Assembly: GCA_950097015.1 (NCBI GenBank)
Contig: CATNEN010000026.1
Span: forward strand, 1,240,001 to 1,304,000
Direction: 5' to 3'
DNA: 64,000 nt
Source of the DNA: Macrostomum hystrix
Lineage: Eukaryota > Animalia > Platyhelminthes
This document shows, one piece after another, positions 9,519-40,868 of the stretch. Each line of letters starts with the position of its first letter. Position 1 is the first letter of the stretch. A program made the position numbers and the translations under genes. Below the pieces are notes generated by a model, which made no database searches, was not told the DNA's origin, and saw nothing but the letters and a program-made list of their open reading frames with translations.

Positions 9519-9628
9519 CAGTCTATGGCCGCGGGCTAGCCGGCCCCAGCTCATGCGTTTATTATGCGCCTAGCCAGGGTGCCCTCATGGTGAGGTGAGC
9601 TGGGCTAGCCGATCGCAGCTCATGAGCC
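9519..9628 (+). repeat. Left terminal inverted repeat of the giant element
   Basis: CTAG cores at 9536, 9570 and 9605 (offsets 17/51/86 from the end) and the palindrome GCTCATGAGC at 9618-9627, mirrored at the right end. Confidence 0.8.
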
Positions 9629-9723
9629 CAGCCCATGGGCCCAGGGTGCGCTCCTGGTGTGGGCCTCGGATATGGGATAGGAAGGTGACGGGGGGGAGGA
9701 GGAGGGGGAGAGGTTGCCCATGA

Positions 9724-9965
9724 GGGCGGATAGCTCAGTCAGTAAGGTGTCGGACTCTGGATCAGATGGTCCTGGGTTCGACTCCCGACCTAGTCTAGAA
9801 CTATTCGTGCAGCCCTTGGCAAGCTGCTTTGCCCTGATGTGCACACAGTCTACTCAGCTGCAGATGAGTACCGACATTTCGTCGGGTAATAATAATTCTG
9901 GCTGGCGTGGAATAAAGCAGTTCTGTGCGGCAATTCTGTGGGGTTCGGATGCTGCCGATATGTTT
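9724..9965 (+). mobile_element. tRNA-derived SINE
   Basis: tRNA-like head GGGCGGATAGCTCAGTCAGTAAGG...CCTGGGTTCGACTCCCGACC with A and B boxes. It is followed by CCCTTGGCAAG...GTCTACTCAGCTGCAGATGAGTACC, resembling conserved central domains of metazoan SINEs. The 3' end is approximate. Confidence 0.72.
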
Positions 9966-10000
9966 GGAAAAATAAATTCTTTAAGAGTTTTCTTAATTTA

Positions 10001-10960
10001 AGAGTTTTTCAAAACATATAGGCTATCCTACTGTATGTGATTCCTTTGGTGCTTCGAATGTACTGTATAGTGCTGATATTGATGTAAATCAGCGTAAAAC
10101 CGCTTTTTTCTTACTCAGCCGGATTAAGAAATGAGTAGGCTTATATGATGTTCTTGTTGTTCTGCAAAACATATAATCATTAATTTAAATAAAAAATGAG
10201 TCGAACCAACGACCCGCAGTTATCAGGCTGACGTGCTACCAGTTTCACCACTTGACATTGCCCATATACAACGAAGAATTACTATTTATTAGTATATTCT
10301 TTCGTTCGAATACTTTTTCAGAGTTTTTCAAAACATATAGGCTATTCTACTGTATGTGATTCCTTTGGTGCTTCGAGTGTACTGTATAGTGCTGATATTG
10401 ATGTAAATCAGCGTAAAACCGCTTTTTTTCTTACTCAGCCGGATTAAGAAATGAGTAGGCTTATATGATGTTCTTGTTGTTCTGCAAAACATATAATCAT
10501 TAATTTAAATAAAAAATGAGTCGAACCAACGACCCGCAGTTGTCAGGCTGACGTGCTACCAGTTAAACCACTTGACATTGCCAGTTTACAACGAAGAATT
10601 ACTATTTATAAGTATATTCTTTCGTTCGAATACTTTTTCAGAGTTTTTCAAAACATATAGGCTATCCTACTGTATGTGATTCCTTTGGTGCTTCGAGTGT
10701 ACTGTATAGTGCTGATATTTATGTAAATCAGCGTAAAACCGCTTTTTTTCTTACTCAGCCAGATTAAGAAATGAGTAGGCTTATATGATGTTCTTGTTGT
10801 TCTGCAAAACATATAATCATTAATTTAAATAAAAAATGAGTCGAACCAACGACCCGCAGTTATCAGGCTGACGTGCTACCAGTTTCACCACATGACATTG
10901 GCCAAATACAACGAAGAATTACTATTTATTAGTATATATTCTTTCGTTCGAATACTTTTT
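10001..10960. repeat. ~320-bp tandem repeat x3, each unit with a truncated tRNA-like segment on the minus strand
   Basis: AGAGTTTTTCAAAACATATAGG starts at 10001, 10320 and 10640. Minus-strand TGGTGAAACTGGTAGCAC...GGTTCGACTC lies at ~10198-10258, ~10518-10578 and ~10838-10898. Confidence 0.93.
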
Positions 10961-12936
10961 TGGCTGCAGGCTGCAGCTTGTGCTTTCTTATTTTAAGCAA
11001 TGGCCATCGTAGCGATCAAATTCGCAACGCAATATTAGCAACGCAAGCAAATATATCGCGAGCTAGCGAATCGCTCCATTATCTAACGACGGGTCCAGCA
11101 GGTCCCCAAATTTTATCTGCAAAGCTTCAAAAACCAAAAGGGTGAACGTCAATATTACAAATTTATTACAAACTCAGCAAAAGTCAAAATTATTAGCACC
11201 CGTAACGAAAGTCATCGATTTATCGTTGCACCAAACATTCTACTTATTTTTGTCATTGCATGTAATCCATAAAGTTTTAAATAAAGACCAGCAAGGCAAA
11301 AATCATTATTTTTAAAGCATAAAAGTAACTTAAAAGAAAGGTTGAAGCGAAAATAGTTCGCTAAAAGATTTTTTTAAACACATACTGCATAAAAACGGCA
11401 AAACAGCGTTTAAATTTTGTAGGGTACGAAGTGCAATGCCTCACACCAGTATCTAAATGTTTTACTTTGTTTAGAGTTACATAAAGTTTCCGGAACATTT
11501 AACCTTTTCGACAGAAATCAACATGATAAATAATCGACCAATTTATAAATCTAATTGATGCAAAGTCATTGCATTCTGTTGCAAAAGCAGTATAATCGCA
11601 CGAGTTCAACCTACTGAAACATCGATTTAGTTAATTCATCTACAAATATTATATATTTTTAATAAAAGTGTCTGAGCTTTCGTGTTCTGCTACAAAGTAG
11701 GGAAACCGTAAGAATTTCTGGTATATTAGGTCTTAATTTAATAATTCTCGAAAAACCAAGGTATTCCAAATAATTAGCTACGAAACACATTATTTTCCTT
11801 TCTTGAAGATCGGCTCGATATTACCCGCAACTTACGTATGTAAACCGTAACGTACTCGTAGCGTTTGAGTTTAAAAAAACAAAATCGTAATAAAGGTATA
11901 GGCTACTTAATACTGCTTTGAAAAAACAAATAATTATGTTCTTAGACATATACATAAAGAAGGCTCTGCAGATTTTTTTGGCGCGGTTTAAATAATTTCA
12001 GATGCATGTTCGTCGGAGTTGTCCGCCATGTTGTTTTTAGCTTTTTCAAATTTTTATTTTGAACTGAATTTTAATTAATTTAGTAATTTAATTTTCTCTT
12101 TGAATTCAACTGAAAGTGAAAGACAGGTAAATCGGGACAAAAAAGTACAAGATTGTACCAATTGCAATCATTCCACATTACTGTTACTTTTTCTAGATTA
12201 TTGCCACTTTGGTAGCTAATTTCGTTCTTCGTAAATCGTAATTAAGGTTAAAAACAAAAATATTTGTATTGTTTACTTCACTCTTCACTTAGTTTTGGAC
12301 AAATCAGAGTCATTTGCACAAGGTAATTAAAAACTCGATAAATGTCTAAACAATGTCAGTTGGAAAATAACATATGTCGCTATATGGCAAAATTACATGG
12401 TTAATATGATGTAATATAACACTCTAGATAGCTAGTATTGAATAGGAAATATTATCTGACTATCTTTGGCAGGTTAGAAACTAGTTAACTCGGCAGTAAA
12501 CCAGTACTATAGCTAGTGCCTATAAGCATTTACTCATATTTAGTTAACATTGAAGATGGGTTAATCCAAAATTTTGTTAGAGGTTGTGCCAGTGTGTATT
12601 AAATTAGAAACAGTTGTCCGACTATAATATTCACTTTTATTTATTAAGTTCTGCTGCTAGTTTCTTTGCATTTCTTGCTTAACAGTGTACCAAGCTCTGC
12701 AACTTTTTATGAAGCAACAGTCACTAATTTCATTTGGTCTTTAGACCTAGCCTCCTAGCCTACTTCCAGAGTCAAAAAGGTGGCTCTGTGTGCCAGAAAG
12801 AAATTATAAACAATGTAATAAGTGACATGCACCACCAATATAAGTAACTTTAACATTGAGTCAAGTAGGCTTTGGTAAATAGTAAATAAAGTAAATAGTT
12901 AATAGGGCAAGATCTCAAAAAAACTAATGCATACTC

Positions 12937-13370
12937 GGCAATGTTTTACTTCCGTTCGTTATATTATTTTTTCGTTTGAATTGACATGGCTTTGCCGTGA
13001 CTTGACACTTGGATCTATGTCTATGGCAAAATCTGGCAAATATGGGGGAACAGGAAGCTTAGGCACAGAAATTCTGCAGCTGAAGATTTTGTGAAGGCCA
13101 AGCTGCGTCAAATGCATGGCACGAATGCTGCTCTATTCGAAAGCCACCTCAAAGAATTCTTATGGCACTGTCTATACCCCAAGAATAGCTTCGGTGCCCT
13201 CCTCTACTGGATTAGGCACTTACCCGGTTTGAAAGAAGAAAGACTGACCAAGACTTTTCAGAACTGTCTGATCAAACTACAGACTTATTGTTACCGTTAA
13301 ACTTGTTTTTGTCGTTATCTGTCATTTGCAAATGAAAAAATAATATAACGAACGGAAGTAGAACATTGCC
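12937..13370 (+). mobile_element. Non-autonomous Merlin (IS1016/IS1595-related) DNA transposon
   Basis: ~37-bp TIRs GGCAATGTT(T/C)TACTTCCGTTCGTTATATTATTTTTT and a perfect 8-bp TSD GCATACTC (12929-12936, 13371-13378). The internal fragment KAKLRQMHGTNAALFESHLKEFLW resembles the ISXO2/Merlin transposase C-terminus. Confidence 0.85.
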
Positions 13371-13976
13371 GCATACTCTTTGCACATAAAGGCTTCTTTC
13401 CAGTGGACCTTGAACTTAAGATCAATATTTATATCGTAAATAGTGAAATTGAAATCTTGAAATCAATCACTTGAGAAGGTATTCGACTGAGATTAGTGGC
13501 AATCCATTGGAGGATTAGAGAAGTCCATGCTGGTATCAGTATCAGACAGGCTGATCATCTAGGCAGAATAGCTGCAGCTGGACACTGCAGCATGACAGTC
13601 TGGCCCTGGCAAAGCTGAGCAAACTGCCACCCCAAGTCTGCCAATCTTTGTCACATTCCATGGAGTCCATGGGTGGCAGTAATGTGTTAATTTGTGAGAG
13701 TGAGAAAAAGGGATTTGTGTGCAAATTTTTAAGTAAATGTTCAATTCTTTATATTCAAGCAAGTGTATAGAAATGACGCCCAAGTGCAGGTCAGCAATCT
13801 CCACAGACTGTAGTTACATGGCCACAATACTTGTGGGAATATATGTTGAATATAAGTGCTATGATTTCATTATAGAATATATAAAACTTTATAGTATTAA
13901 ATAGAAAACAGTTGTCTGTCTACAATATTAAATACTGTAAACCAATGATTATAAATTACTTTCTCATTTCCAGACA

Positions 13977-16424
13977 ATGTATCGCGGCATCGAACTGAAG
14001 CGTGTTGTCAAAGCTACACTGCAAACTGGCTGTCGTGGGCGACCCAGAAAGATTAAGACAATCATTAGCGGCCGAAATCGAGGCTCAACATCTCGGCGTC
14101 CTGTGTCTGAAACTACTCCTGTTCCAGTGGAAGCTAGCACCGAGAATGATGTCGGTATGCCTGAGTCTTTTGCTCCTACAGTAGAAGATGTTGAATGGGT
14201 AGATTTTGACAGCTTTGCTGAGAAATACAGAGGTAGTTACGAGAAGCATTTTCTCTTAAATCTGTGTTCCTCTTGCTATGAGCACGAAGGTGTATATCGA
14301 TGTGTTACTTGTCGACTTAGCTTATGTGCCAGCTGTAAGAATGAGACGCATAAAAAGTTTTCAGCCCACAAGTTTCTCATATGGAATAAGGAGAGTCTAA
14401 TGTTTCAGGAACTGGATGCTACTCACGATGCTTTTGAAATGTTTTGCTGCGCTTCTAGTAAATTGAATCTGAATGTCTGTGCGGCTACAAAAGTTGACCT
14501 TATAGATCTGGCTGGAAGCGTAAAGGTCATTTTTATTACCTGCGACTCCTGTGATCTTATTGGTGCACTCCTTTCTCAAGGGTTCTTCCCTTGTTGCGAA
14601 GGGTCAAAGCCTGATTCAGATGGGTATGCATTCTTTTCTTTTACCTTTTTGTCCCTGCTAGACAGTTTGTGTATGACTGGGCAGTTGCCTGTTCACAGAG
14701 CGGTCAGTACACTGCTCATTGGGCCAACTCTGGGACAAGGTACATATAATTTGGCTCTTGTAAAAAGCACTTATCAACGCATTCAACGACATGATGTTTT
14801 GCTGCGGTTTCGCCACCTGCAAATGGCCTCAGCAAAATGGCCAAATAATTGTCTTCTCTGTCCAGATAATCACGCTGTGCGCAAAACTGTTGTCTGTGCA
14901 GATGCTCTATTTGGTTGGCAGCGCTTTAAAGCCAGGGGGCGTACACAACTGGAAATACCATCAGATGGTCGTCCATTACCTACGCCGCTTGTCTATGTAG
15001 ATATTAAAGCGGATGTGCCAAAAAATCGAGCAGAGGAACAGAATTGTCCTAATTGGAAGGCCGGTGCTCATGAACCATTAAGCCGTGAGCAGAGACATGA
15101 TGTCACGGGTTTCTTTGGATTATTCTGTCGTCACAATCGCCTTTTGTGTGGCTCAAATATCACAACTGGTGGAGAAAAGTTTTGCTACCTGGAACAGTGC
15201 CTTGAACACTTTCTGCGAAACGTCAAAGTGTCTAAGGAATTACTTGTCGTATATGACGTGGGTAAGTTTATTATTATTTTATAAAATGCATACAATCTAT
15301 GAAATACTGTTGCTTGTGTACAGTTATATGACAACATGACTTACTCTTTATCCCAATTCACAGGCTGTCGCGTATCCAGCCGGGTTAAATCCGCTATTGC
15401 GAAGTCTGGTGCCAACATTCAAGCGAGTAGCTGTGCAATAAACGCTTTTCATGCTCTTGGTCACCTGCCCAGTTGTCAAAAAAAGTTTTCTGTTCGCGTT
15501 ACTCCAGGCGCAGGTCTATGCGATGGAGAGAATACTGAGCGAGCCTGGTCTCAACTCAGGCCGTTCGGTAAGTTTTTAAAGTACATGCGGAAAGACCGAC
15601 GAGCACAATACATGGCGCATATTCTATACTTCTTTAATGCACAACAGCTTCTTAGCGCTTCTGGGTGGTTTACACAACGTATTAAGCTTATGGTAGGTGC
15701 GGGAAAAAGCATTCTAAGTGAACTAAAAGAGCTACAAAGCCAGTCTGCGATTTTGCAGCACTCGGGGGTCCGAAATGACAGTCTGGTCATCTCTGAGGAT
15801 GAAATTTTGGATTTAGGCTCCCAATGGTATGAAGATTCCCTCCGAGTAGCTGTACACAACTCGGAAGATGATATCCTATGTGAGCTACGCGCTCTTGCAG
15901 TGCACAGAGATCATTGGAGTAAACAGGTTGGTAAGTCAGTTGGCCAAAGTCAAACCAGAATGTGCTTGCGAAAGGTTAAAAGTTATGCATCCGACATGAA
16001 AAAACTCTACGCTCGTCTTCCAATTGAAGACAGAGCTTCTTTCGATGAATATAAAAAACCGCGTAGTGCGAAATATGAACATTTGTCTGGAACCGACCTT
16101 TCCATCCGATTTCGTCAGCGGGCTATAGACGTCAGTAACAAATATAAACGCCTAAAAGAAGAAGCGCATATTATTTCAGATGAGTGGGTTGACCTTCAGG
16201 TTAATTTGCAGAGCCTCTGTGATGACTTAGCGAATCAGCCGGGCTTAGCCGCTCAATTTCGGGAATTGTTTAGAAGACTGCTTGAAGATGTTGCAAGTAA
16301 AAGCGTGACTGATGCTGTAAAATATCTTCTTGCGAATAAATTCTCCCTCAGCACACTGAGTCAGAGCGCTAATGAAGCGGTTGCTTCAGAAGATTCGGAG
16401 TCTTCTGATAGCGACTCCGATTAA
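13977..16424 (+). CDS. CxC-domain KDZ (Kyakuja-Dileera-Zisupton) transposase, 781 aa, join(13977..15261,15364..16424)
   Basis: Cys cluster CSSC..YRCVTC...LCASC...H..FSAH and GFFP. KDZ motifs: CLLCP, VCADALF..QRF, DVTGFFGLFCRH, GEKFCY, VVYDVG|CR, FHALGHLPSCQ, GAGLCDGENTERAWSQL. A phase-1 intron (GTAAG...CACAG) joins the two ORFs in frame (1285+1061 nt = 782 codons). Confidence 0.9.
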
Positions 16425-16495
16425 GTATCCAACCAGTGTACTGATGATTCCACCGTTACTTGTGTTTTTAATTGAAGTCAAGCGCTGCCTTGTAA

Positions 16496-17174
16496 AGTCA
16501 CTCTGCACCTACTTTTGTGTGGGTGCTGTGAAGCGTTAAGTTTAAGATCGCTAAAATTAATACCATTAAGCCCAAAATTTGGACACATTTCTTTCAACTA
16601 GCAAATTTTTTGCAGGTCACTTTGCACATGCAATACAATGTGCTGTGAAGCGTTAAGTTTAAGAACGCTAAAATTAATACCAGTAAGCCCAAAGTTTGGA
16701 CACATATTTCTTTCAACTAGCAAAATATTTACAGGTCACTTTGCACATGCAATTCAATGTGCTGTGAAGCGCTACATTTTAAAGCGCTATGAGCCCATGT
16801 GTCAGCCTTCTCGCGGCGGACTCGTTGAGCGCGAATAAAATCTGCTAATTACCGTGCGCTGCCAATCTTACCGTGCATGTTTGCACTATCCAGCGGACTG
16901 GCAGTGTACTTACGTTAGCTGTTTTTATTCGTGGGACTAATGACACTATTAAATTCGTTCATTTATCAGCTTTTCCGTTCAATTCCGTTTTATTATTATT
17001 ATATAGCTCACAGTTTCATTGTCTGTCAAATAAATGGAGGGGCTCCTAAACAGTGTTTCTCGTTCTTATTTTTTCATTGCTTGCCGTGCCTGATAAACAT
17101 GTTTTCCTTTTTTAGCATTTACATACTTGCGCCTATATACGTCACCGATTTCAGCGAAACGCAGGCAACTTAAA
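16496..17174 (+). repeat. Leader cassette copy 1 (with an internal ~140-bp duplication), upstream of the finger-SET gene
   Basis: Nearly identical to 18341-18902 and 19758-20200. Starts GTCACTCTGCACCTACTTTTGTGTGGG and ends TTTCAGCGAAACGCAGGCAACTTAAA. Confidence 0.9.
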
Positions 17175-17222
17175 TAAACTCTTTAAAAAATCAAAATTCA
17201 GATTTCAAATTCAAAAGACAGC

Positions 17223-18235
17223 ATGCCCACTGATAAGCTCGATTGTCCGTTATGTCTTCCTGGTTTATCTGCCTATTCGGCCAGACCTGACAGGCTCGCT
17301 CTGCATATTGAAACGCATCATCCAAACGCGAAAGGGAAGACGGAATGCATCATTCAATATCTACGTTGGTCGAAGAAGGCCGATGCAAAATTGTGCCAGC
17401 TATGCGATACATTCTATGTACATTTGCGGCAGCACTATAAGCTGATTCACACCATCGAATTCCGGCGACTTAACACTTTGCTGACAGGTCAACCAGCCAT
17501 GCGACTCGCGCGAAAGCGTGGTGTTAAACGTTTTGGTGAAATATTCTGGTGGTTTACTTCCAATCAGCCGTTGCCAAACTATCCGTCCTCAGATGGCGAC
17601 TGTGTTGGAAAGCTGGAAGAACAAAGGTAATTAATTTGTGAAGGGCATGTCACGATCTCATTTAAAGCTTAGTTACGTAAAATGCAAACTGCCTGTGCCA
17701 TCTGTATTTTCTAAGTCTTGTCAACACTTCCCACAGGCACTGCGAATCTTCTGCTGGCCAACGATCATGCATAGATGTCTACAGGAAAAGTTCAAATTTC
17801 GTCCCAGCCAAGGTTTTAGTGAAGCCTTCTGGTGAGAAGGGTCTCGGTATTTTTGCTGGTGAACTAATTAGAGCTGATTCATTCGTGTGCTTCTATGGTG
17901 GCACCGTAATATCTAGAAAACAAGGACTCGCCAGAGAGCAGGAGAGGGCATCTAAAGGCGAGTCACCTTGTTTTGCGTTTTTCTTTTTTTATGGCTCCCA
18001 ATCGCTTTGCGAAGATGCTACTGATAGTTTTTCCCTTGGTCGGTTTATTAATCACAGTCGGTTGACTCCAAATCTAATGCCAAGGGCGATACCACCATGT
18101 AAAGAAATCGGACGGAACGTCTGCAGGATCGCTTTTTTTGCTATTCGGGACATTCTAGAAGGGCAAGAATTGCTCTTCGATTATTCTGAAACTGACGAAG
18201 AGTGTCTAAAGAGGTTTCCCTGGCTGCAATCTTAA
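17223..18235 (+). CDS. C2H2-like zinc-finger + SET-domain (PR-Set7/SETD8-like) protein, 284 aa, join(17223..17626,17785..18235)
   Basis: Fingers CPLC..H.ETHH and CQLC..HLRQHYKLIH. A phase-2 intron (AG|GTAATT...CTACAG|G) gives an in-frame join. SET motifs: KGLGIFA, FYGG, CEDAT, LGRFINHS, GQELLFDY and the terminal FPWL typical of SETD8/PR-Set7. Confidence 0.8.
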
Positions 18236-18340
18236 AAGTTCAAAAAATTGTACCAACTAGTCACTGCTAATCATTTTGAATTTGTTGCACATGCGTCAGA
18301 CAAATTTCTTCAAAACTTGTCGCATAAAACATTACAGCAG

Positions 18341-18902
18341 GTCACTCTGCACCTACTTTTGTGTGGGTGCTGTGAAGCGTTAAGTTTAAGAACGCTAAAA
18401 TTAATACCAGTAAGCCCAAAGTTTGGACACATATTTCTTTCAACTAGCAAAATATTTACAGGTCACTTTGCACATGCAATTCAATGTGCTGTGAAGCGCT
18501 ACATTTTAAAGCGCTATGAGCCCATGTGTCAGCCTTCTCGCGGCGGACTCGTTGAGCGCGAATAAAATCTGCTAATTACCGTGCTCTGCCAATCTTACCG
18601 TGCATGTTTGCACTATCCAGCGGACTGGCAGTGTACTTACGTTAGCTGTTTTTATTCGTGGGACTAATGACACTATTAAATTCGTTCATTTATCAGCTTT
18701 TCCGTTCAATTCCGTTTTATTATTATTATATAGCTCACAGTTTCATTGTCTGTCAAATAAATGGAGGGGCTCCTAAACAGTGTTTCTCGTTCTTATTTTT
18801 TCATTGCTTGCCGTGCTTGATAAACATGTTTTCCTTTTTTAGCATTTACATACTTGTGCCTATATACGTCACCGATTTCAGCGAAACGCAGGCAACTTAA
18901 AA
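18341..18902 (+). repeat. Leader cassette copy 2
   Basis: Near-identical to copy 1; ends ~40 bp before the ATG at 18943. Confidence 0.9.
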
Positions 18903-18942
18903 AAAACTTTAAACTTCAAACTGTAAACACACAAAACTCATC

Positions 18943-19677
18943 ATGCCCAACAAACACGCGAAAGTGTCCTGTCTTGTCTGTTCCAATTGGACTGGTAGAT
19001 CCTACATGCTTTGGAGGCATTGCGAGAAAAGGCACCCCGCTCTGGAGGATGACAGGATTCAGGCGATGATTGACTTCGCGAAGGCGACTTCAAAAGCGAA
19101 GCCGGTGTGTCTCTGTCCGATATGCGGGGCTCTGATTTCTCACCAAAGAGCGCATTTTAAGAGATGCCACGTACCTGAATATGGCTCTACATACCGCCGC
19201 AAAGCCCTCTCGGGTCGTGCGGCTGTCCTGAAATTACGCGAATCAGGTTCGCGGCGTGTAGCAGAACTTCACAAACTTGCTACAGAAGAAAAGCATCCAC
19301 TCCAATACATGGAACTTGAGTTCGCTGCTAGTCAGCTATCTATTCTGGTTGAGATGTACAAGGATATCGGCGAGGTACAAATTACATCAGCAACTAGCCA
19401 AGAGACGAGTGCGTCAACAAAACTTCCCGCAGAACAGCAGCAGCAGGAAGAGCGCTGCAACTCTTCTGAAGGTGCTCCTAAAAGTCCTAAACCTACGCCA
19501 GAAACTCATCGAGTTCCAGCTAAAATCTGTCGAAACCCATTACCATTTGTGATTCCTCCAAGAGTCCCTTATTGCGTCAAACCCTTACCGCCTATTGTCT
19601 TGCGTAAATCTGCTACCAACTTGACCCGATATAACCCGAAAATTCCCACCTCGTCTCCCATAAAAATTGCTACCTGA
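18943..19677 (+). CDS. Zinc-finger protein paralogous to the N-terminus of the 17223 gene, with a Pro/Lys-rich tail and no SET domain
   Basis: MP..., CLVC..H.EKRHP, CPICG..SHQRAHFKRCH and EY...LSG.AA..LR..G.RR.AE align motif for motif with 17223-17626. Confidence 0.65.
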   Translation: MPNKHAKVSCLVCSNWTGRSYMLWRHCEKRHPALEDDRIQAMIDFAKATSKAKPVCLCPICGALISHQRAHFKRCHVPEYGSTYRRKALSGRAAVLKLRESGSRRVAELHKLATEEKHPLQYMELEFAASQLSILVEMYKDIGEVQITSATSQETSASTKLPAEQQQQEERCNSSEGAPKSPKPTPETHRVPAKICRNPLPFVIPPRVPYCVKPLPPIVLRKSATNLTRYNPKIPTSSPIKIAT

Positions 19678-19757
19678 GGTCTTCCTGTTGGAACAAAATA
19701 CCATACCACCCCTATCCCATGGAAAAATTGGTATATCGACAGAGCCAATTACAGCAA

Positions 19758-20200
19758 GTCACTCTGCACCTACTTTTGTGTGGGTGCTGTGAAGCGTTAA
19801 GTTTAAGAGCGCTAAAATGAATACCAGTGAGGCCAAATTTTGGATACAATTCATTCAACTAGCAAAATATTTACAGGTCACTTTGCACATGCAATTCAAT
19901 GTGCTGTGAAGCGCTACGTTTTAAAGCGCTATGAGCCCATGTGTCAGCCTTCTCGCGGCGGACTCGTTGAGCGCGAATAAAATCTGCTAATTACCGTGCG
20001 CTGCCAATCTTACCGTGCATGTTTGCACTATCCAGCGGACTGGCAGTGTACTTACGTTAGCTGTTTTTATTCGTGGGACTAATGACACTATTAAATTCGT
20101 TCATTTATCAGCTTTTCCGTTCAATTCCGTTTTATTATTATTATATAGCTCACAGTTTCATTGTCTGTCAAATAAATGGAGGGGCTCCTAAACAGTGTTT
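19758..20200 (+). repeat. Leader cassette copy 3 (3'-truncated, no downstream ORF recognised)
   Basis: Same sequence as copies 1 and 2 up to CCTAAACAGTGTTT, then diverges. Confidence 0.88.
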
Positions 20201-20470
20201 CGCGTTTTCGTTTTTTAATTGCTTGTTTTTTAGATGCGCTTTCTTTCTGCTCATTAGTTGGCTGTGCAGGGAACAACTAGGACAAATGGAGATAGATGTG
20301 CATTTGAGAATAGACTGCCTGCTTTATACAATTATATGCATGGCAGATCAATGTCCTTATTAGCGTTTATATATTAGCGTTCACGCCTTCATTTAGGGTC
20401 TAGCTTTAATTGTCAACGTTTCAAACTTCAATCTCGAATAAATTTCAGGCCAGCATCACTTCCATTGAAA

Positions 20471-20964: not shown

Positions 20965-21880
20965 ATGGTCAGAGGAGAGCTAGAGTCAAACTGTTCAGAA
21001 TATGTTCCGATGACTAAATTATTCAGTTTTCCCTGGTAGTCATGCAATTTCTTGGATGGTCAGAGGAGAGCTAGAGTCAAACTGTTCAGAATATGTTCCG
21101 ATGACTAAATTATTCAGTTTTCCCTGGTAGTCATGCAATTTCTTCAATGGTCAGAGGAGGGCTAGAGTCAAACTGTTCAGAATATGTTCCGATGACTAAA
21201 TTATTCAGTTTTCCCTGGTAGTCATGCAATTTCTTGGATGGTCAGAGGAGAGCTAGAGTCAAACTGTTCAGAATATGTTCCGATGACTAAATTATTCAGT
21301 TTTCCCTGGTAGTCATGCAATTTCTTGGATGGTCAGAGGAGAGCTAGAGTCAAACTGTTCAGAATATGTTCCGATGACTAAATTATTCAGTTTTCCCTGG
21401 TAGTCATGCAATTTCTTCAATGGTCAGAGGAGAGCTAGAGTCAAACTGTTCAGAATATGTTCCGATGACTAAATTATTCAGTTTTCCCTGGTAGTCATGC
21501 AATTTCTTGGATGGTCAGAGGAGAGCTAGAGTCAAACTGTTCAGAATATGTTCCGATGACTAAATTATTCAGTTTTCCCTGGTAGTCATGCAATTTCTTC
21601 AATGGTCAGAGGAGGGCTAGAGTCAAACTGTTCAGAATATGTTCCGATGACTAAATTATTCAGTTTTCCCTGGTAGTCATGCAATTTCTTGGATGGTCAG
21701 AGGAGAGCTAGAGTCAAACTGTTCAGAATATGTTCCGATGACTAAATTATTCAGTTTTCCCTGGTAGTCATGCAATTTCTTGGATGGTCAGAGGAGAGCT
21801 AGAGTCAAACTGTTCAGAATATGTTCCGATGACTAAATTATTCAGTTTTCCCTGGTAGTCATGCAATTTCTTCAATGGTC
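20965..21880. repeat. 91-bp tandem repeat x10
   Basis: ATGGTCAGAGGAGAGCTAGAG recurs at 20965 and 21056; units are nearly identical. Confidence 0.97.
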
Positions 21881-22249
21881 GTGCTCCCTTGCAAACGAGC
21901 AGCGGAGTGAGAGGAGAGAGTTCTGAAGTTCTGAACGCGTTTGACAATGATAAAATATCAAACTCTAATACCTGCTTTCTTTATGCTCACTGTGCATGCA
22001 CTGTATGTGTTTTTACGTGAGGGTCTGTACTTTGTTCAATTAATGTTTCTGTCTAACTAGGACTTTTCACCAATTCTTTTCCGTGTCAATCTTCAGGGAA
22101 AATACATAAGCTAATTTATCAAAACATATCAGCGCATCTCATTGGCAAAAATTGTGCCGCACAGGCACGGCATAGGTGACCTGCTGCAAGGTATACTGAC
22201 TAAAATTATTATTATGTTATTATTATTACTTCTTTCTTGGAATCACAGG

Positions 22250-22516
22250 GTGAGGTGACAGAGAAGAGGGTGAGGTGACAGAGGAGAGAGTGGGGTGACA
22301 GAGAGGAGAGAGTGAGGGCACAGAGGAGAAAGTGAGGGCACAGAGGAGAAAGTGAGGGCACAGAGGAGAAAGTGAGGGCACAGAGGAGAAAGTGAGGGCA
22401 CAGAGGAGAAAGTGAGGGCACAGAGGAGAAAGTGAGGGCACAGAGTGGAGAAAGTGAGGGCACAAAGGAGAAAGTGAGGGCACAGAGTGGAGAAAGTGAG
22501 GGCACAGAGAGGAGAA
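22250..22516. repeat. ~20-bp purine-rich minisatellite (GAGAAAGTGAGGGCACAGAG)n
   Basis: Direct tandem copies are visible. Confidence 0.95.
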
Positions 22517-22632
22517 AGTTAACTTTGATGAATTTCGATGGGATTTGATTCCCCGTATTCTGGGATAGACGTAGAAGCGATCCCTGTCGAAATCCGGGGT
22601 CAATAAGTAAGCCTGCGGCGTCGCATCACACA

Positions 22633-25600
22633 GACTATACTTAATTATTACTATTGTAGCCAGATTTATAAACTTGAACTGGAGCTTGTGGGCACCTATT
22701 GCCGTTTAGGAAAATTCAAGAAACCAACAATTGCAGTGCCACGCTTGGCCTCAACTACATGATTTTCGCACTACAAAGACTATACTTAATTACTATTGTA
22801 GCCCGATTTATAAACTTGAACTGGAGCTTGTGGGCACCTATTGCCGTTTAGGAAAATTCAAGAAACCAACAATTGCAGTGCCACGCTTGGCCTCAACTAC
22901 ATGATTTTCGCACTACAAAGACTATACTTAATTACTATTGTAGCCAGATTTATAAACTTGAACTGGAGCTTGTGGGCACCTATTGCCGTTTAGGAAAATT
23001 CAAGAAACCAACAATTGCAGTGCCACGCTTGGCCTCAACTACATGATTTTCGCACTACAAAGACTATACTTAATTACTATTGTAGCCAGATTTATAAACT
23101 TGAACTGGAGCTTGTGGGCACCTATTGCCGTTTAGGAAAATTCAAGAAACCAACAATTGCAGTGCCACGCTTGGCCTCAACTACATGATTTTCGCACTAC
23201 AAAGACTATACTTAATTACTATTGTAGCCAGATTTATAAACTTGAACTGGAGCTTGTGGGCACCTATTGCCGTTTAGGAAAATTCAAGAAACCAACAATT
23301 GCAGTGCCACGCTTGGCCTCAACTACATGATTTTCGCACTACAAAGACTATACTTAATTACTATTGTAGCCAGATTTATAAACTTGAACTGGAGCTTGTG
23401 GGCACCTATTGCCGTTTAGGAAAATTCAAGAAACCAACAATTGCAGTGCCACGCTTGGCCTCAACTACATGATTTTCGCACTACAAAGACTATACTTAAT
23501 TACTATTGTAGCCAGATTTATAAACTTGAACTGGAGCTTGTGGGCACCTATTGCCGTTTAGGAAAATTCAAGAAACCAACAATTGCAGTGCCACGCTTGG
23601 CCTCAACTACATGATTTTCGCACTACAAAGACTATACTTAATTACTATTGTAGCCAGATTTATAAACTTGAACTGGAGCTTGTGGGCACCTATTGCCGTT
23701 TAGGAAAATTCAAGAAACCAACAATTGCAGTGCCACGCTTGGCCTCAACTACATGATTTTCGCACTACAAAGACTATACTTAATTACTATTGTAGCCAGA
23801 TTTATAAACTTGAACTGGAGCTTGTGGGCACCTATTGCCGTTTAGGAAAATTCAAGAAACCAACAATTGCAGTGCCACGCTTGGCCTCAACTACATGATT
23901 TTCGCACTACAAAGACTATACTTAATTACTATTGTAGCCAGATTTATAAACTTGAACTGGAGCTTGTGGGCACCTATTGCCGTTTAGGAAAATTCAAGAA
24001 ACCAACAATTGGTGCCACGCTTGACCTCAACTACATGATTTTCGCACTTCAAAGACTATACTTAATTACTATTGTAGCCAGATTTATAAACTTGAACTGG
24101 AGCTTGTGGGCACCTATTGCCGTTTAGGAAAATTCAAGAAACCAACAATTGCAGTGCCACGCTTGGCCTCAACTACATGATTTTCGCACTACAAAGACTA
24201 TACTTAATTACTATTGTAGCCAGGTTTATAAACTTGAACTGGAGCTTGTGGGCACCTATTGCTGTTTAGGAAAATGCAAGAAACCAACAATTGGTGCCAC
24301 GCTTGACCTCAACTACATGATTTTCGCACTTCAAAGACTATACTTAATTACTATTGTAGCCAGATTTATAAACTTGAACTGGAGCTTGTGGGCACCTATT
24401 GCTGTTTAGGAAAATGCAAGAAACCAACAATTGGTGCCACGCTTGGCCTCAACTACATGATTTTCGCACTTCAAAGACTATACTTAATTACTATTGTAGC
24501 CAGATTTATAAACTTGAACTGGAGCTTGTGGGCACCTATTGCTGTTTAGGAAAATGCAAGAAACCAACAATTGGTGCCACGCTTGACCTCAACTACATGA
24601 TTTTCGCACTTCAAAGACTATACTTAATTACTATTGTAGCCAGATTTATAAACTTGAACTGGAGCTTGTGGGCACCTATTGCCGTTTAGGAAAATTCAAG
24701 AAACCAACAATTGCAGTGCCACGCTTGGCCTCAACTACATGATTTTCGCACTACAAAGACTATACTTAATTACTATTGTAGCCAGGTTTATAAACTTGAA
24801 CTGGAGCTTGTGGGCACCTATTGCTGTTTAGGAAAATGCAAGAAACCAACAATTGGTGCCACGCTTGACCTCAACTACATGATTTTCGCACTTCAAAGAC
24901 TATACTTAATTACTATTGTAGCCAGATTTATAAACTTGAACTGGAGCTTGTGGGCACCTATTGCCGTTTAGGAAAATTCAAGAAACCAACAATTGCAGTG
25001 CCACGCTTGGCCTCAACTACATGATTTTCGCACTTCAAAGACTATACTGAATTACTATTGTAGCCAGATTTATAAACTTGAACTGGAGCTTGTGGGCACC
25101 TATTGCTGTTTAGGAAAATGCAAGAAACCAACAATTGGTGCCACGCTTGACCTCAACTACATGATTTTCGCACTTCAAAGACTATACTTAATTACTATTG
25201 TAGCCAGATTTATAAACTTGAACTGGAGCTTGTGGGCACCTATTGCCGTTTAGGAAAATTCAAGAAACCAACAATTGCAGTGCCACGCTTGGCCTCAACT
25301 ACATGATTTTCGCACTACAAAGACTATACTTAATTACTATTGTAGCCAGGTTTATAAACTTGAACTGGAGCTTGTGGGCACCTATTGCTGTTTAGGAAAA
25401 TGCAAGAAACCAACAATTGGTGCCACGCTTGACCTCAACTACATGATTTTCGCACTTCAAAGACTATACTTAATTACTATTGTAGCCAGATTTATAAACT
25501 TGAACTGGAGCTTGTGGGCACCTATTGCCGTTTAGGAAAATTCAAGAAACCAACAATTGCAGTGCCACGCTTGGCCTCAACTACATGATTTTCGCACTTC

Positions 25601-26157
25601 AAAGACTATACTGAATTACTATTGTAGCCAGATTTATAAACTTGAACTGGAGCTTGTGGGCACCTATTGCTGTTTAGGAAAATGCAAGAAACCAACAATT
25701 GGTGCCACGCTTGACCTCAACTACATGATTTTCGCACTTCAAAGACTATACTTAATTACTATTGTAGCCAGATTTATAAACTTGAACTGGAGCTTGTGGG
25801 CACCTATTGCTGTTTAGGAAAATGCAAGAAACCAACAATTGGTGCCACGCTTGACCTCAACTACATGATTTTCGCACTTCAAAGACTATACTTAATTACT
25901 ATTGTAGCCAGATTTATAAACTTGAACTGGAGCTTGTGGGCACCTATTGCTGTTTAGGAAAATGCAAGAAACCAACAATTGGTGCCACGCTTGACCTCAA
26001 CTACATGATTTTCGCACTTCAAAGACTATACTTAATTACTATTGTAGCCAGATTTATAAACTTGAACTGGAGCTTGTGGGCACCTATTGCTGTTTAGGAA
26101 AATGCAAGAAACCAACAATTGGTGCCACGCTTGACCTCAACTACATGATTTTCGCAG
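22633..26157. repeat. 142/140-bp satellite, ~25 copies
   Basis: GACTATACTTAATTACTATTGTAGCC recurs at 22778 and 22920. The variants TTGCAGTGCC (142 bp) and TTGGTGCC (140 bp) give a 282-bp dimer period in the middle of the array. Confidence 0.97.

Positions 26158-30061: not shown

Positions 30062-30096
<35 letters not shown>
30062..30096. repeat. (GGC)11 microsatellite
   Basis: Read directly from the sequence. Confidence 0.95.
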
Positions 30097-30099
<3 letters not shown>

Positions 30100-33584: not shown

Positions 33585-33810
33585 GATGTGGGATAACTGC
33601 TGAAGTGGGATAACTGCTGCACTGGGAAAACTGCAGAAGTTGAATTACTGGATGAAGTTAGATAACTGCTGAAGTAAGATAACAGGTTAAGTGGGATTAC
33701 TCCTGAAGTGGGCTATCTGATGAAATGGGATTTCTGCCGATATGGGATAACTGTAGATGGGGGATAACTGGTGAAAGGGGATAGCTGCTTAAGGGGATAT
33801 CTGATGAAGT
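33585..33810. repeat. Degenerate ~17-bp repeat GTGGGATAACTGCTGAA
   Basis: About 12 degenerate copies; related copies at ~34365-34450. Confidence 0.7.
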
Positions 33811-34607: not shown

Positions 34608-35153
34608 CTATTTAAAGGCACAGAAACTCACATTCATCTTCCAATTTCGCCACTTGCGGCCTCCCCGATGATGAGGGCGGCCGCGGCGAATCTGCTGCTG
34701 GGGATGGGGGGGAGGGTGGGCTGGGCCTGGGTTGGGTTGGGGAGGGATGGGACGGGCTGGACGGGGGGGTTGGCCGACTGGGGCAGGGGTGGTAAGGGTG
34801 GGTTGTGGGCCTGGGTTGGGTTGAGGAGGGATGGGGCGGGCTGGACGGGGCGGTTGGCCGACTGGGGCAGGGGTGGTGAGGGTGGGTTGTGGGCCTGGGT
34901 TGGGTTGAGGAGGGATGGGGCGGGCTGGAAGGTTGGGTTGGGCGGGGAGAAGAGGGCGGACTGGGGCAGGGGCAGGCTGGGTCGGGATCGGGGGGGGAGC
35001 GCCGGCCACCCGGGCATATGAAGCCCTGGTGGCCGGCCTGGACGGTGGCGGCGAAGGCGGCGGCGTTGGCGGTGGCGGGGGGCGGGGCGGGGCCCGCAAG
35101 GGACGGGCGTCGGCCCGACCCTTTTTTCTGCCGGCCGATTTTTTCTTTGATGC
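34608..35153 (-). CDS. Putative terminal exon encoding a Pro-rich protein with basic ends (function unknown)
   Basis: Acceptor ATTTCAG is followed by an open frame ASKKKSAGRKKGRADARPLRAPPRPPPP...SYARVAG, a 28-aa repeat (x~2.5), and RRGRPHHRGGRKWRNWK...stop. GC-rich island in AT-rich flanks. The frame and upstream exons are uncertain. Confidence 0.4.
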   Translation of the reverse strand, partial: ASKKKSAGRKKGRADARPLRAPPRPPPPPTPPPSPPPSRPATRASYARVAGAPPPIPTQPAPAPVRPLLPAQPNLPARPIPPQPNPGPQPTLTTPAPVGQPPRPARPIPPQPNPGPQPTLTTPAPVGQPPRPARPIPPQPNPGPAHPPPHPQQQIRRGRPHHRGGRKWRNWKMNVSFCAFK

Positions 35154-37028: not shown

Positions 37029-38165
37029 CTATCTAGGAAAAAGATGGACTGTCCTACTGTTTGGCTGTTGTGAGATAACATGTTCTTCAGCAGCACTTTG
37101 CTGTGTCATATGTGACAGGCTTGGTAATGAAAATTGTAAAGGTACCTGAGGAGGTACTTGAGACTCAGATATCTGTATTTCATCTGGCAATAACATACCT
37201 GGGTAATAATTCTGCGAAAACTGAGCAAGACGTAGGTGACTATGTATTACTTGATTTTGAGAACTTCTAAGTTGCTGCAAATGAATGTCTTCTAAATAAG
37301 CATCTGGATTTTGGAATAAATTGTCAATACTATTGATATTTGAAGTAGTATTGTTGAGACTGGTAATATCATTGACATTACTTTGTGATGCTTCTGCACT
37401 TTGACTACATTCTTCATTGAGGCTTATCTCAGCCTCAGCAGCATAGTCATTTTGCTGTGTAGCCACTATTGCAGAATCATTACCATTTGCACTAGTACCT
37501 TGCATGCCAACAAGCAATGCTTGATTTTGGTTTGCTAGAGTACCTTCAGTGCTAATTGTAGGTGCTACATTTCTCTCATTCCATTCTGAATGAGACCAAA
37601 ATTTTACTTCACCATGATCAGAAATTGCCTGAAATTGTGCAACACATTGCTGTTGGTTAAGATTATGGGGTGAAGAGAAGTTGGGAATAAAACGTCCTGG
37701 CCCTTTCTTCTGACCTGTAGCTAAATCAGAAGCTATAAGTGCCCATTGAATTGCACCAGAGTTGCCTGCCCTTTCATAAGCGTCCTTAGCTATTTTACTA
37801 AGCTCTTTGCGCATGTAGACAACACCCTTTTTAATAATTTCTTCAAACTTTCCTTCTGTTTGAGGAAGCTGCTGCAAATTTTGAAGCCTGTGTTGCGCTT
37901 GCTTATCTGCTCTTATAAAATCAACAATAGAACTACATGCTTCTTGGACCTGTCCACTCAAAGTGCCAGTGACATCTTTAGAACAGTGATAAATGGCTCT
38001 GTCATGTTCAGTAATTCTAATAACAATGTAAGTTTCTTTATGTTTGTCCAAGTCCTGAATGATTCTTTTAATTGGGCGAGGTCGATTTTTAGCAGCTTTT
38101 CTTAGTCGTTCTTTTTTTGCTATACTTAGACCCCTATACTTCTCTAGCAATGCTGAAGTCCAAGC
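37029..38165 (-). CDS. Orphan ~375-aa coding exon (basic helical N-part, Q/S/N-rich C-part)
   Basis: Long non-repetitive ORF (37029-38150) in AT-rich DNA, preceded by CTTCATTTCAG as a likely acceptor. No family recognised. Confidence 0.55.
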   Translation of the reverse strand, partial: AWTSALLEKYRGLSIAKKERLRKAAKNRPRPIKRIIQDLDKHKETYIVIRITEHDRAIYHCSKDVTGTLSGQVQEACSSIVDFIRADKQAQHRLQNLQQLPQTEGKFEEIIKKGVVYMRKELSKIAKDAYERAGNSGAIQWALIASDLATGQKKGPGRFIPNFSSPHNLNQQQCVAQFQAISDHGEVKFWSHSEWNERNVAPTISTEGTLANQNQALLVGMQGTSANGNDSAIVATQQNDYAAEAEISLNEECSQSAEASQSNVNDITSLNNTTSNINSIDNLFQNPDAYLEDIHLQQLRSSQNQVIHSHLRLAQFSQNYYPGMLLPDEIQISESQVPPQVPLQFSLPSLSHMTQQSAAEEHVISQQPNSRTVHLFPR

Positions 38166-40298
38166 TGAAATGAAGAAGTATATGATATTAAAAATATTTA
38201 AACGAGATTTCCACTAAACTAGGCTTTTGTCCAGAACTGCAAGAATTAAAAGTGAGGCCATGCTTAAGGTAATCTCCCCTTGACCTCAGGGGAGAGAACA
38301 ACACCATCACTGAATTAACTGTTTAAATATAAAATGAAAAATTAACACCCAAACCAGCATTATGCATGAAAGCATATTTACCAAGTTTTTAAGGCAGTCA
38401 CCCATTTTTTAGAAACTAAGAAAGCTGCCCTTTTCCTTTTTCCAGTCAGCTGTACAATTCTGAACAAAAACCAAGTTCGTAGGTGCAGAAATGCCCAATT
38501 CCTTTAAATCTTACTGTATATAAAACACTTACTAGCACAGCCCTTCTTTCGAAGAAATTCATTGCCGCTAGTAGGTCCCATCTAAAATTAAGTTTTTAGC
38601 AATATGTAAATCAAATGTCTGTCACATGAACTATTTACCTACACTTCATTGGCAAACTATATATTTTTGGAGTCTATAGGCATGTCAAGTAATACCATAT
38701 TATAGGGCCACAAAATGGTCAAGTTAGAAAATCCAAAACTGTAACATGTCACCATTGCTATTAATAGGAAAAAGCATAAAAAATTCATGAAATACAATTT
38801 CGAATTCTTAACTTGAAAATTAGTTCTACTTTGAAACTTTTTCTTCAGGAATTATTTAGCATGGGCATGGTGAATTTTTTGGTCTTGGAACAGCTATTTA
38901 AGTATTCTATAGCTACCAGTGGGACTGATATATTCATTTCCTTGAAGGTACTCTTAACAGGCCCTAGTCAAAACACATGCTGCACACATTTCACAAGCTT
39001 TGAGTTTTTTCAACTTTTAAAGAGGTAATCACAGTTTAATCATGGTTTTCTGTTTTTGCACTAAATATTGATACTAATACATTTTCCTCAAACATTTCCA
39101 GCCTGCCTTGCTTGCTGCCTGACTGTTCGCTTGTCAACATTATGGACTCTAATGGACGACTAGGTCTATGCTGTCAAACTGCCATTGTCTGGTTCTAGGC
39201 AAGCCTCAAGTTACTGCAATACTTTTGCTCTCAGAGCTAGCTACTATCAGCCTGCAGCTCGACTCTTTGGACGAGCGTGAGTTAATATTGATTGCTTTTG
39301 TGAAAGTTACAGTTCAATGTGAATTCAAATGCAATGGCCCTCATTTTTTATAAACAGGTGTTTTGGCCCTATATGGTCCCATTCTATTAATGCTACATGC
39401 TAATACCAATAATTAAACGAGGACTCGATTCCATGTGATTCTCAGATTCTCCTCTCTACATCAGCCTCGAGGAGACATGCCCGCTATGGTCAGGCATTTT
39501 CCTTATATTTAACACACTGACTTTGACAAATAGAGGCTGTTCCTGTTTCTAACTTTCAATTACATTCAAATTCTGCCGCTTTCCACAGTGCTTTTTTCAT
39601 CTGCTCTCTCTCCCGATCTCTCCGTCATTCCCCTTTTCTCCTGCGCCAGATGCAGAGTAAGAACGGCTAACAGTTGATACTACTCCTCATCTAGTAGTCT
39701 GTGTCGCAACTTTTCTGTATTGGTTTGACTGAAATATTCACTTCCTTGAAGGCACTCTTAACAGGTCATAGTCACAGGCCACAGGGCATGTTACATATTT
39801 CTCCGGGCTGCAGGTGTGGGTGCACTGATTAAGAGTTGGACTATCTAAGATTTGACACCTTGATCTGAATGGCGTAGGCGAGGGGGTCATACTAGCTACT
39901 AGTAGCCGAACACTAGTAGTATGGGTTACCAGAAATCTGCCTAACACAGGGGAAATAGGAGAGCGTGCATTTGAATGGGAGAGGGTGGCCTATACTCTGC
40001 ATATAGGATAGGTGACGCTGTGACGATCTATGTGGCTGAGGGGTTGGAGCCCCATTACAATTACTCAACAGAATTCTGAGCACCAAAAATTAGCGAAAAT
40101 TATCAGCATGAGCTTGCCGTGACACCCGAGACAGTAATGACCCCTGGAATGGATTTCTAGGCTATGTATGCCACTGTTTAGATCTGCATGAAAAGCTTGT
40201 TTAGCAGGCAGCATTAATGAGCTATTACTACTATAAATATTGATAGTAATATTTATAATACCAGCAATTTCCAACTATGTAGATTATTATACAGCAGT

Positions 40299-40458
40299 AA
40301 CAAATATGGATTGATTTTGACATGCCACAAACTCTTACAATACATTATTACAAATACGAAAATATTAAACTGACATGGGTCAAATAACAAATATGGATTG
40401 ATTTTGACATGCCACAAACTCTTACAATACATTATTACAAATAGGAAAATATTAAACC
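40299..40458. repeat. 87-bp direct duplication
   Basis: AACAAATATGGATTGATTTTGACATGCCACAAAC occurs at 40299 and 40386. Confidence 0.85.
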
Positions 40459-40757
40459 GACATGGGCACCTAAACTTGGCTTACCTGTCAGTTCTTATTT
40501 GAGCTAATAAAAAAGGTTTCTATTTAACAATTCTAGCTAGTATAGGATATAGAATTAGATTTAAAGTTTTGACTCGACGAGCTCTTTACTATTCGAGTTT
40601 TGGTGGGAAGAGGAAAAACAGCTCGTTCCCCTTTGTCCCCCGCTCAAATAGGGATGTATGGCACCATCGTCTAGTTCGTTCCCAAGTTCGCGTAAACAAC
40701 CCCTCCCAGCCAACCACGCTTCATCATGGGGTTCCCACGCTTCACGTTCCCACAGGG

Positions 40758-40868
40758 AGCTCATGAGCTGCACTCGTCTAGCCGGACTCATGGCACGGTG
40801 AGGTGACCTGGGCTAGCCGTCTAATTTTTACCGTGAGCTGAGGCCGGCTAGTCCACGGCCGTTAGGTG
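40758..40868 (-). repeat. Right terminal inverted repeat of the giant element
   Basis: CTAG cores at 40848, 40813 and 40778 (offsets 17/52/87 from the end) and GCTCATGAGC at 40759-40768. Confidence 0.8.

Follow-up and report, generated by a model that had tools for sequence, protein, structure and literature searches.

A 31-kb KDZ transposon with a SET-domain gene in a Macrostomum flatworm

Can a stretch of more than 31 kb that interrupts a repeat in a flatworm genome be a single DNA transposon, and does the KDZ transposase gene inside it belong with its ends? We addressed this question in a window of 64,000 nucleotides of a Macrostomum hystrix contig (CATNEN010000026.1, positions 1,240,001 to 1,304,000 of the forward strand; coordinates below are those of the window). 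An initial annotation based on the sequence alone had proposed that positions 9519-40868 are a giant terminal inverted repeat (TIR) transposon with a KDZ transposase and chromatin-modifier cargo, inserted into a Helitron. Our analyses support the main points of this reading: an insertion bounded by TIRs and a target-site duplication (TSD), an intact KDZ transposase, a SET chromatin-modifier gene, an invertebrate host, and a Helitron-like host repeat.

Boundaries of the insertion and the empty site

The insertion spans 31,350 bp and is flanked by an exact 7-bp duplication, GTGGCGG, at 9512-9518 and 40869-40875, which cannot be lengthened in either direction. The left junction reads ...GCAGAGTGGCGG followed by CAGTCTATGG, and the right junction reads ...CCGTTAGGTG followed by GTGGCGGAGGGGAG. 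The ends are imperfect inverted repeats of about 125 bp of the form 5'-CA..TG-3', the left terminus occupying 9519-9643 (plus strand) and the right terminus 40744-40868 (minus strand, on which it reads CACCTAACGG...). A blastn comparison aligns 9527-9627 with 40860-40759 at 73.8% over 103 bp, 89 of the first 125 positions are identical (about 71%), and the local alignment score of 48 is far above that of 500 shuffles (9.7 +/- 1.9, maximum 19). CTAG cores lie at offsets 18/52/87 on the left and 18/53/88 on the right, with TAGC-core motifs (GGCTAGCC, CCTAGCC, and GGCTAGCC) at 9534, 9568, and 9603 on the left. The palindrome GCTCATGAGC lies about 100 bp into each end, at 9618-9627 and 40759-40768, and occurs nowhere else in the window. 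The initial annotation could not exclude an 8-bp TSD with one mismatch; however, this reading requires AGTGGCGG to be paired with GGTGGCGG and removes the terminal G of ..TG, and we reject it because it breaks the invariant CA..TG ends.

Removal of the insertion restores the sequence of an uninterrupted, inverted paralog of the host repeat. The interrupted copy lies at 6846-9518 (plus strand), of which 9339-9518 is very high copy, and continues at 40869-41056, whereas the paralog lies at 41360-43058 (minus strand). Positions 9397-9518 match 41662-41541 (98%) and positions 40869-41056 match 41547-41360 (99%), and the two matches overlap by exactly the single GTGGCGG at 41541-41547. Contigs from other sequencing runs also continue past 9518 with AGGGGAGTTGG..., the uninterrupted form, although no public contig examined bridges either junction of the insertion, because the host repeat is high copy and short-read contigs break there. 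The assignment of the host repeat to Helitron rests only on a helicase remnant, a Pif1 2B domain (E = 1.9e-19) in an open reading frame (ORF) of the paralog at 41716-42384, and no Rep domain appeared in the ORFs scanned.

Gene content and expression

The element contains three genes in tandem on the plus strand. The first, whose mRNA spans 13973-16524, encodes an intact 781-aa KDZ transposase in two exons (13977-15261 and 15364-16424) separated by a 102-nt GT..AG intron (15262-15363). The two exon pieces score 38.6 and 59.9 bits against the KDZ model (Pfam: PF18758; gathering score 26.6) and cover model positions 3-125 and 125-214, and paralogs score 110-125 bits. The uninterrupted ORF keeps every near-invariant residue of 10 homologs, including D309, D375, E400, and D427, and has conserved cysteines at 189, 192, 292, and 295. 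A first word-based search with exon 1, limited to a length range that excluded full-length relatives, recovered one 45%-identical fragment. The second gene (mRNA 17154-18370) encodes a 300-aa zinc-finger-SET protein (17223-17626 and 17737-18235, with a 110-nt intron at 17627-17736). Its SET domain (Pfam SET, E = 6.6e-16) has SETD8/KMT5A as its best named relatives of solved structure (E about 1e-14), and the motifs FINHSRLTPN and ELLFDYS, corresponding to the NHS..PN and ELxFDY motifs of SET-domain lysine methyltransferases, are visible in the translation. The third gene (18943-19677) encodes a 244-aa protein whose N-terminal two-finger module is paralogous to that of the SET protein. Three cassettes of about 580 bp that are 96-97% identical, the first at 16495-17187 (plus strand) and the others at 18337-18913 and 19748-20225 (the last truncated), carry the spliced-leader acceptor and 5' UTR of the next gene.

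The transposase and SET genes are expressed. Their introns are removed in three RNA runs but not in the DNA run, and spliced-leader tails were found at 13973 (acceptor at 13972/13973), 17154, and 19015, although the contig for the third gene has an anomalous 5' joint. The leader is absent from the window and is identical to the published M. lignano leader.

In contrast to this gene-bearing region, about 20 kb of the element has no recognizable genes and is partly satellite-like. Between the left end and the transposase gene lie a nested high-copy short repeat (9723-9970), SINE-like with a tRNA-like start and with a depth about 60x that of its neighbors in the DNA run; a 320-bp tandem array of three units (9997-10960); and a nested MITE-like element (12936-13371) with 43-nt inverted ends (95%), the high copy depth of which was measured only from 13200. 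Neither ARAGORN nor Rfam at gathering thresholds on the whole window found anything, so the SINE-like repeat remains unclassified. A satellite-like block at 20965-26156 is composed of 91-bp x10 (20965-21880), 20-bp x13 (22250-22519), and 142-bp x25 (22621-26156) arrays. An orphan ORF of 373 aa near the right end (37029-38150, minus strand; 37032-38150 in the homology searches) matches no Pfam family, has no homolog among 5.8 billion proteins, and gave only noise in the ESM Atlas, and whether it is a gene is unclear. Pfam searches of 20 further ORFs or stop-to-stop segments of the element gave no family.

Relatives in M. lignano and the link between termini and transposase

The initial annotation inferred, but could not test, that the KDZ gene belongs with these termini, and this inference now has support from two diverged KDZ elements in the M. 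lignano assembly, here called L001 and L002, whose transposases are 54% and 45% identical to that of the window. In both, the KDZ gene is followed by ZnF-SET and ZnF genes, and the KDZ intron is at the same position. Both also keep the same left-end architecture, CA followed by three TAGC-core motifs about 35 bp apart, 5-9.5 kb upstream of the transposase. The L001 left end CAGTTTATGGCCGC matches the window at 13/14 positions, with 0 of 100 shuffles giving any match, and the two ends in the window and the left ends of L001 and L002 align at 68% mean identity with invariant CA and three TAGC cores. The triple-TAGC pattern marks all four of these termini; five other matches (window 40539 and 40779; L002 7456; L005, a more distant M. 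lignano KDZ locus, 1393 and 1426) are not termini, against a chance expectation of 0.14-0.38 per sequence. No other inverted-repeat pair brackets the KDZ gene within the element. L001 and L002 run at least 22 kb and at least 17.8 kb, respectively, from their left ends without reaching a right end within the 10-kb flanks examined, and paired ends and TSD length are therefore confirmed in one element only. The relatives have a different tandem array between the left end and the transposase gene, tblastx of the right and left arms against the relatives found no conserved coding sequence, and blastn and megablast of the window against the M. lignano loci found no shared repeats. The more distant KDZ loci L003-L008 have neither SET neighbors nor the terminal motif. 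The ZnF-SET gene and its ZnF paralog form a conserved module rather than captured host genes, and the SET gene is a conserved accessory gene rather than random cargo.

Based on these observations, we consider it likely that positions 9519-40868 are one autonomous cut-and-paste transposon of the KDZ superfamily that inserted as a unit into a copy of a high-copy Helitron-like repeat. We propose that the transposase, which has a B-box-like zinc finger, a putative Cys cluster, and a KDZ RNase-H-like core, recognizes the three spaced TAGC-core motifs at each end, cuts at the CA..TG termini, and integrates with a 7-bp stagger. That this transposase moved the whole 31 kb is an inference. Only one copy is visible, as the DNA depths of the left terminus (about 1100-1600), the KDZ gene (1120-1460), and the flank (1594) are alike in the one DNA run examined, the single-copy depth of which was not calibrated, and no second insertion with a different TSD could be shown.

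Alternative explanations and relation to known elements

The alternative that survives best, although we consider it unlikely, is that the transposon is real but was much smaller when it inserted, and that no 31-kb unit was ever mobilized. About 7 kb (22% of the element) is tandem arrays, at least two small high-copy repeats are nested inside, and the right arm has no conserved or recognizable coding sequence; part of the 31 kb may therefore have accrued after insertion. However, the lengths of L001 and L002 indicate that large size is a family trait, the TSD is still perfect, and the host-repeat copies differ by only 1-2%, which leaves little time for 20 kb of growth. Much less probable is that the termini belong to another family that makes 7-8-bp duplications (P-type, or hAT with a 7-bp TSD, as in hAT7 elements; PMC12730594), with the KDZ-SET genes as passengers mobilized in trans; only one insertion was seen, but the same terminal architecture lies upstream of KDZ genes in both relatives, and no other transposase domain was found in the element among the ORFs scanned. 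Least likely is a domesticated, immobile host gene cluster within a rearranged or misassembled region: although the genes are low copy, steadily expressed, and use host trans-splicing, the junctions are unconfirmed by independent reads, and the distant M. lignano loci L004 and L005 look like multi-exon host genes, a misjoin would not produce inverted termini, an exact 7-bp duplication, and perfect restoration of the uninterrupted repeat, the form that all other copies show.

The 7-bp TSD and CA..TG termini fit those reported for fungal Kyakuja elements such as Kyakuja-1_LB of Laccaria bicolor (Kojima 2025, PMC12730594), which also carry an epigenetic-modifier gene next to a KDZ transposase, rather than Zisupton of fish and other animals, which has TIRs but makes 8-bp TSDs (PMC12730594). 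We are cautious in assigning the element to Kyakuja, as the position of its transposase relative to Kyakuja, Dileera, and Zisupton (clade definitions of Iyer et al. 2014, PMC3918813) was not resolved. The fungal Kyakuja elements are described as lacking TIRs and their accessory gene is TET/JBP rather than SET, whereas the element described here is 31 kb, resides in an animal, has TIRs with three spaced motifs, and encodes a transposase with a B-box-like finger whose detectable relatives are all animal. The "gigantic" KDZ1-KDZ3 transposons of Cryptococcus (PMC11343200) likewise have TIRs, TSDs, and extra genes, and their experimentally shown mobility makes the mechanism credible; they differ in their size of 9-11 kb, 8-bp TSD, 236-bp TIRs, and absence of a SET gene, and they belong to the Dileera clade and have a CxC1 domain. 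The HarbingerS and MuDR transposons of Phytophthora (Kojima and Jurka 2014, as cited in PMC12730594) also encode a SET-domain lysine methyltransferase, but belong to different transposase superfamilies and live in oomycete hosts.

We infer that the SET protein modifies chromatin at the element or its targets, as proposed for the TET/JBP genes of fungal KDZ elements. More speculatively, and on evidence that leaves this doubtful, Macrostomum flatworms may harbor a still-active lineage of very large (more than 17 to 31 kb) KDZ transposons whose methyltransferase writes a histone mark at the element's own copies or target sites, to evade silencing or to guide integration; this would be the first animal transposon with a dedicated histone-modifying accessory enzyme, and a natural high-capacity vector in a genus where transgenesis already works (M. 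lignano). Given that the transposase is intact and transcribed and that M. lignano is a close relative, the element could be tested directly for mobility and for use as a large-cargo vector.

KDZ elements are well described only in fungi and, as Zisupton, in fish, and a complete animal element with defined ends, TSD, and terminal motifs fills that gap, bringing the 7-bp/CA..TG signature reported so far for fungal Kyakuja into an animal KDZ lineage. The SET gene is linked to the transposase in three elements whose transposases have diverged to about 50% identity, which argues that the methyltransferase serves the transposon, in parallel with TET/JBP in fungal KDZ elements and SET in Phytophthora transposons, and gives a testable case of a mobile element manipulating host chromatin in an animal.

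Insertion site and genomic setting

The left junction reads ...TTTGGCCCGCAGAGTGGCGG|CAGTCTATGGCCGCGGGCTAGCC and the right junction reads ...CCGTTAGGTG|GTGGCGGAGGGGAGTTGGGG. The 7-mer GTGGCGG is exact on both sides and cannot be extended, because the bases beyond it differ. The reverse complement of 41400-41700 reads ...TTTGGCCCGCAGAGTGGCGGAGGGGAGTTGGGG with a single 7-mer. Repeat finding and a self-BLAST give the same picture, in that 9397-9518 pairs with 41662-41541 (98%), 40869-41056 pairs with 41547-41360 (99%), and the two matches overlap by exactly 41541-41547. The insert thus interrupts one of two inverted copies of a repeat, and the other copy is the empty site. The two ends of the element are inverted repeats well beyond chance: blastn aligns 9527-9627 with 40860-40759 at 73.8% identity, 89 of the first 125 positions agree, and the local alignment score is 48, compared with 9.7 +/- 1.9 (maximum 19) in 500 shuffles. 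CTAG cores sit at offsets 18/52/87 and 18/53/88 of the two ends, and GCTCATGAGC, located about 100 bp in, occurs nowhere else in the window.

The interrupted repeat is very abundant, with a depth over 9359-9511 that is 45-80 times that of 8951-9307 in the DNA run. Contigs from three runs, including one from a second species, continue past 9518 with AGGGGAGTTGG..., which is the uninterrupted form. The paralogous copy carries a Pif1 helicase 2B domain (E = 1.9e-19), and the description "Helitron-like" is therefore reasonable. The two Helitron-like copies (6846-9518 + 40869-41056 and 41360-43058) lie tail to tail as an inverted pair only 303 bp apart once the insert is removed; their internal sequence differs between 7135-9338 and 41786-42770, and the first copy holds a GC-rich 69-bp tandem array (8149-8961) that creates long artefactual ORFs on both strands. 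Host genes flank the region, namely a class-C GPCR exon at 2448-2894 and CNOT1 at 49.5-62.5 kb. More than 80 copies of a 35-bp unit (81-88% alike) with strong negative GC skew are found at 51400-54500, inside the span of the CNOT1 gene (exons at 49.6-62.5 kb).

In the DNA run, depth is about 1100-1600 over the left terminus, 1120-1460 over the KDZ gene, about 900 over the upstream spacer, and about 490 over the SET gene, compared with 1594 over a unique-looking flank (8951-9307) and 14,000-127,000 over nested repeats. The element is therefore low copy, roughly one to three, although the single-copy depth of this run could not be calibrated. A contig of a second species covers 9163-9518 and runs on into the uninterrupted form, and that run has no depth on the terminus; however, given that its library type is only presumed, we treat this as a homologous empty copy and not as a proven orthologous empty site. 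The perfect TSD and the 1-2% divergence between the two host-repeat copies suggest a fairly recent insertion.

Gene content and expression

Three runs behave as RNA, in that they carry GT..AG joints that the DNA run lacks. Their contigs begin with ...TGCGAAGACTCAATTTATTGCAT at 13973, 17154, and 19015. This string is absent from the window and is the 3' part of the published spliced leader of Macrostomum lignano, CCGTAAAGACGGTCTCTTACTGCGAAGACTCAATTTATTGCATG (PMC5173321), which identifies the host as a Macrostomum flatworm. The transposase of the window is not among M. lignano proteins in the databases. The leader is found at all three genes of the transposon, at mapped acceptors for the transposase and SET genes. 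These tandem same-strand genes, about 630 bp apart, look operon-like.

Pfam searches identified a KDZ transposase domain split across ORFs 13977-15284 and 15336-16424, at model positions 3-125 and 125-214. RNA contigs from three samples skip 102 nt with GT..AG ends, whereas the DNA contigs do not, and the spliced coding sequence (13977-15261 + 15364-16424) is an uninterrupted 781 aa. An alignment with ten homologues shows that this protein keeps every near-invariant residue, including the eight Cys/His of a B-box-like finger, four further Cys, and D309, D375, E400, D427, H458/H462, and D482/E484/E487. The ATG of the leader itself is in frame, two codons upstream of the ATG of the transposase ORF (leader ..ATG + ACA ATG TAT). 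The mRNA of the second gene runs from 17154 to 18370 with a 110-nt intron and gives a 300-aa product with two C2H2-like fingers and a SET domain (Pfam E = 6.6e-16). Its best named solved relatives are SETD8/KMT5A (E about 1e-14), and the NHS..PN and ELLFDY motifs are present. RNA depth is similar for the transposase and SET genes, at about 9-11 in each of the three runs.

The third gene, referred to here as gene 3, is ORF 18943-19677 (244 aa), which has a paralogous two-finger N-terminus and no SET domain. The SET gene and gene 3 are each preceded by a nearly identical ~580-bp cassette, of which the first carries the mapped trans-splice acceptor (17154) and the second the equivalent sequence; a third, truncated cassette follows. 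Contigs for gene 3 read leader + GCGAAACGC and then continue at 19015, which skips about 126 nt within 18879-19015, including the ATG at 18943, without a GT donor. This joint may be an alignment or assembly effect of the repeated cassettes or a transcript of a paralogue; a joint that goes back 770 nt (19100 to 18331) belongs to the same puzzle.

From 20.3 to 40.8 kb we did not identify any recognisable gene. Twenty further ORFs or ORF segments gave no Pfam family, and no homologue was found for the 373-aa ORF at 37029-38150. About 7 kb of the element (22%) is composed of tandem arrays, including 142 bp x25 and 91 bp x10, and two small high-copy repeats are nested in the left arm.

Association of the termini with the KDZ transposase

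The initial annotation inferred, without a test, that the KDZ transposase mobilised the whole 31-kb insert, which requires that these termini belong to this transposase. Within the element, no other inverted pair brackets the KDZ gene. A full HMMER scan of 1.84 billion representative proteins found only 14 relatives of the exon-1 piece, the best four of which are from M. lignano. One of their loci (L001, with a 54% identical transposase) has KDZ, then a 300-aa SET gene, then a gene-3 homologue, and a second (L002, 45%) has KDZ, a ZnF gene, and a ZnF-SET gene. Both have the KDZ intron at the same codon. A UniRef model that fuses KDZ and SET turned out to be the L002 locus.

L002 has GGCTAGCC three times, at 5052, 5087, and 5121, and a CAG lies 15 nt before the first. 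This is the same offset and spacing as in the window, 5.0 kb upstream of the KDZ start. L001 has CAGTTTATGGCCGC at 487, which matches the window's first 14 bases at 13 positions, a match that none of 100 shuffles gave, and three TTAGC-core motifs follow at the same spacing, 9.5 kb upstream of KDZ. The four termini, that is, both window ends and the left ends of L001 and L002, align at 68% mean identity, with CA and the three TAGC cores invariant. A pattern of three TAGC cores 33-36 bp apart marks all four; however, five other matches (window 40539 and 40779, L002 7456, and L005 1393 and 1426, the last in a more distant KDZ locus of M. lignano) are not termini; the chance expectation is 0.14-0.38 per sequence. 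Of these, the triple at 40465-40539 lies at the terminal spacing about 330 bp inside the right end, beside an 87-bp tandem repeat (40298-40466), and may represent extra binding sites or chance.

Terminal architecture and gene module therefore travel together across elements whose transposases have diverged to about 50%, which is the association that the initial annotation called for, although it is shown for left ends only. Neither L001 nor L002 reaches a right end within the DNA examined, so they are at least 22.0 and at least 17.8 kb long, respectively, and large size is a family trait. Both carry a long array of a ~158-bp unit (GCGCCAATTTGAGC-rich; L001 749-7319 and L002 5347-7170), about 80% alike between the two loci, between the left end and the transposase, where the window element has an unrelated 320-bp array. 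A satellite in this position seems to be part of the layout of the family. More distant KDZ loci in M. lignano and a nemertean have neither a SET neighbour nor the motif. One such KDZ gene (29% identical) is spread over about 11 kb with many introns and is present at two near-identical M. lignano loci among ordinary host genes (L004 10001-21350 and L005 10001-21009), and it looks like a domesticated or duplicated host gene rather than a transposon.

Comparison with known KDZ elements

Fungal Kyakuja families are reported to make 7-bp TSDs and to have CA..TG termini without TIRs, and Zisupton and the Dileera family tested make 8-bp TSDs (Kojima 2025, PMC12730594). The present element matches Kyakuja on TSD and termini but has imperfect TIRs, and an 8-bp reading needs a mismatch and breaks the invariant ..TG. 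The Cryptococcus elements KDZ1-3, called gigantic at 9-11 kb, have 8-bp TSDs and 236-bp TIRs and have been caught transposing (PMC11343200); the element described here is three times longer. Transposon-borne SET genes are cited for Phytophthora HarbingerS and MuDR (PMC12730594), and we found none for KDZ elements or for animals in the limited literature searched. A review of giant eukaryotic transposons does not mention KDZ. The detectable relatives of the transposase are all animal (flatworm, priapulid, nemertean, and fishes) and its CxC1/CxC2 matches are below threshold, and its clade relative to Kyakuja, Dileera, and Zisupton is unresolved.

The structure is real, and the initial annotation is essentially right. 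Although paired ends and TSDs in other copies, junction-spanning reads, and the share of the length that moved at insertion remain unproven, as does any function of the SET protein, the best reading of these data is an autonomous, expressed, Kyakuja-like KDZ transposon of 31 kb with a conserved ZnF-SET/ZnF accessory module.
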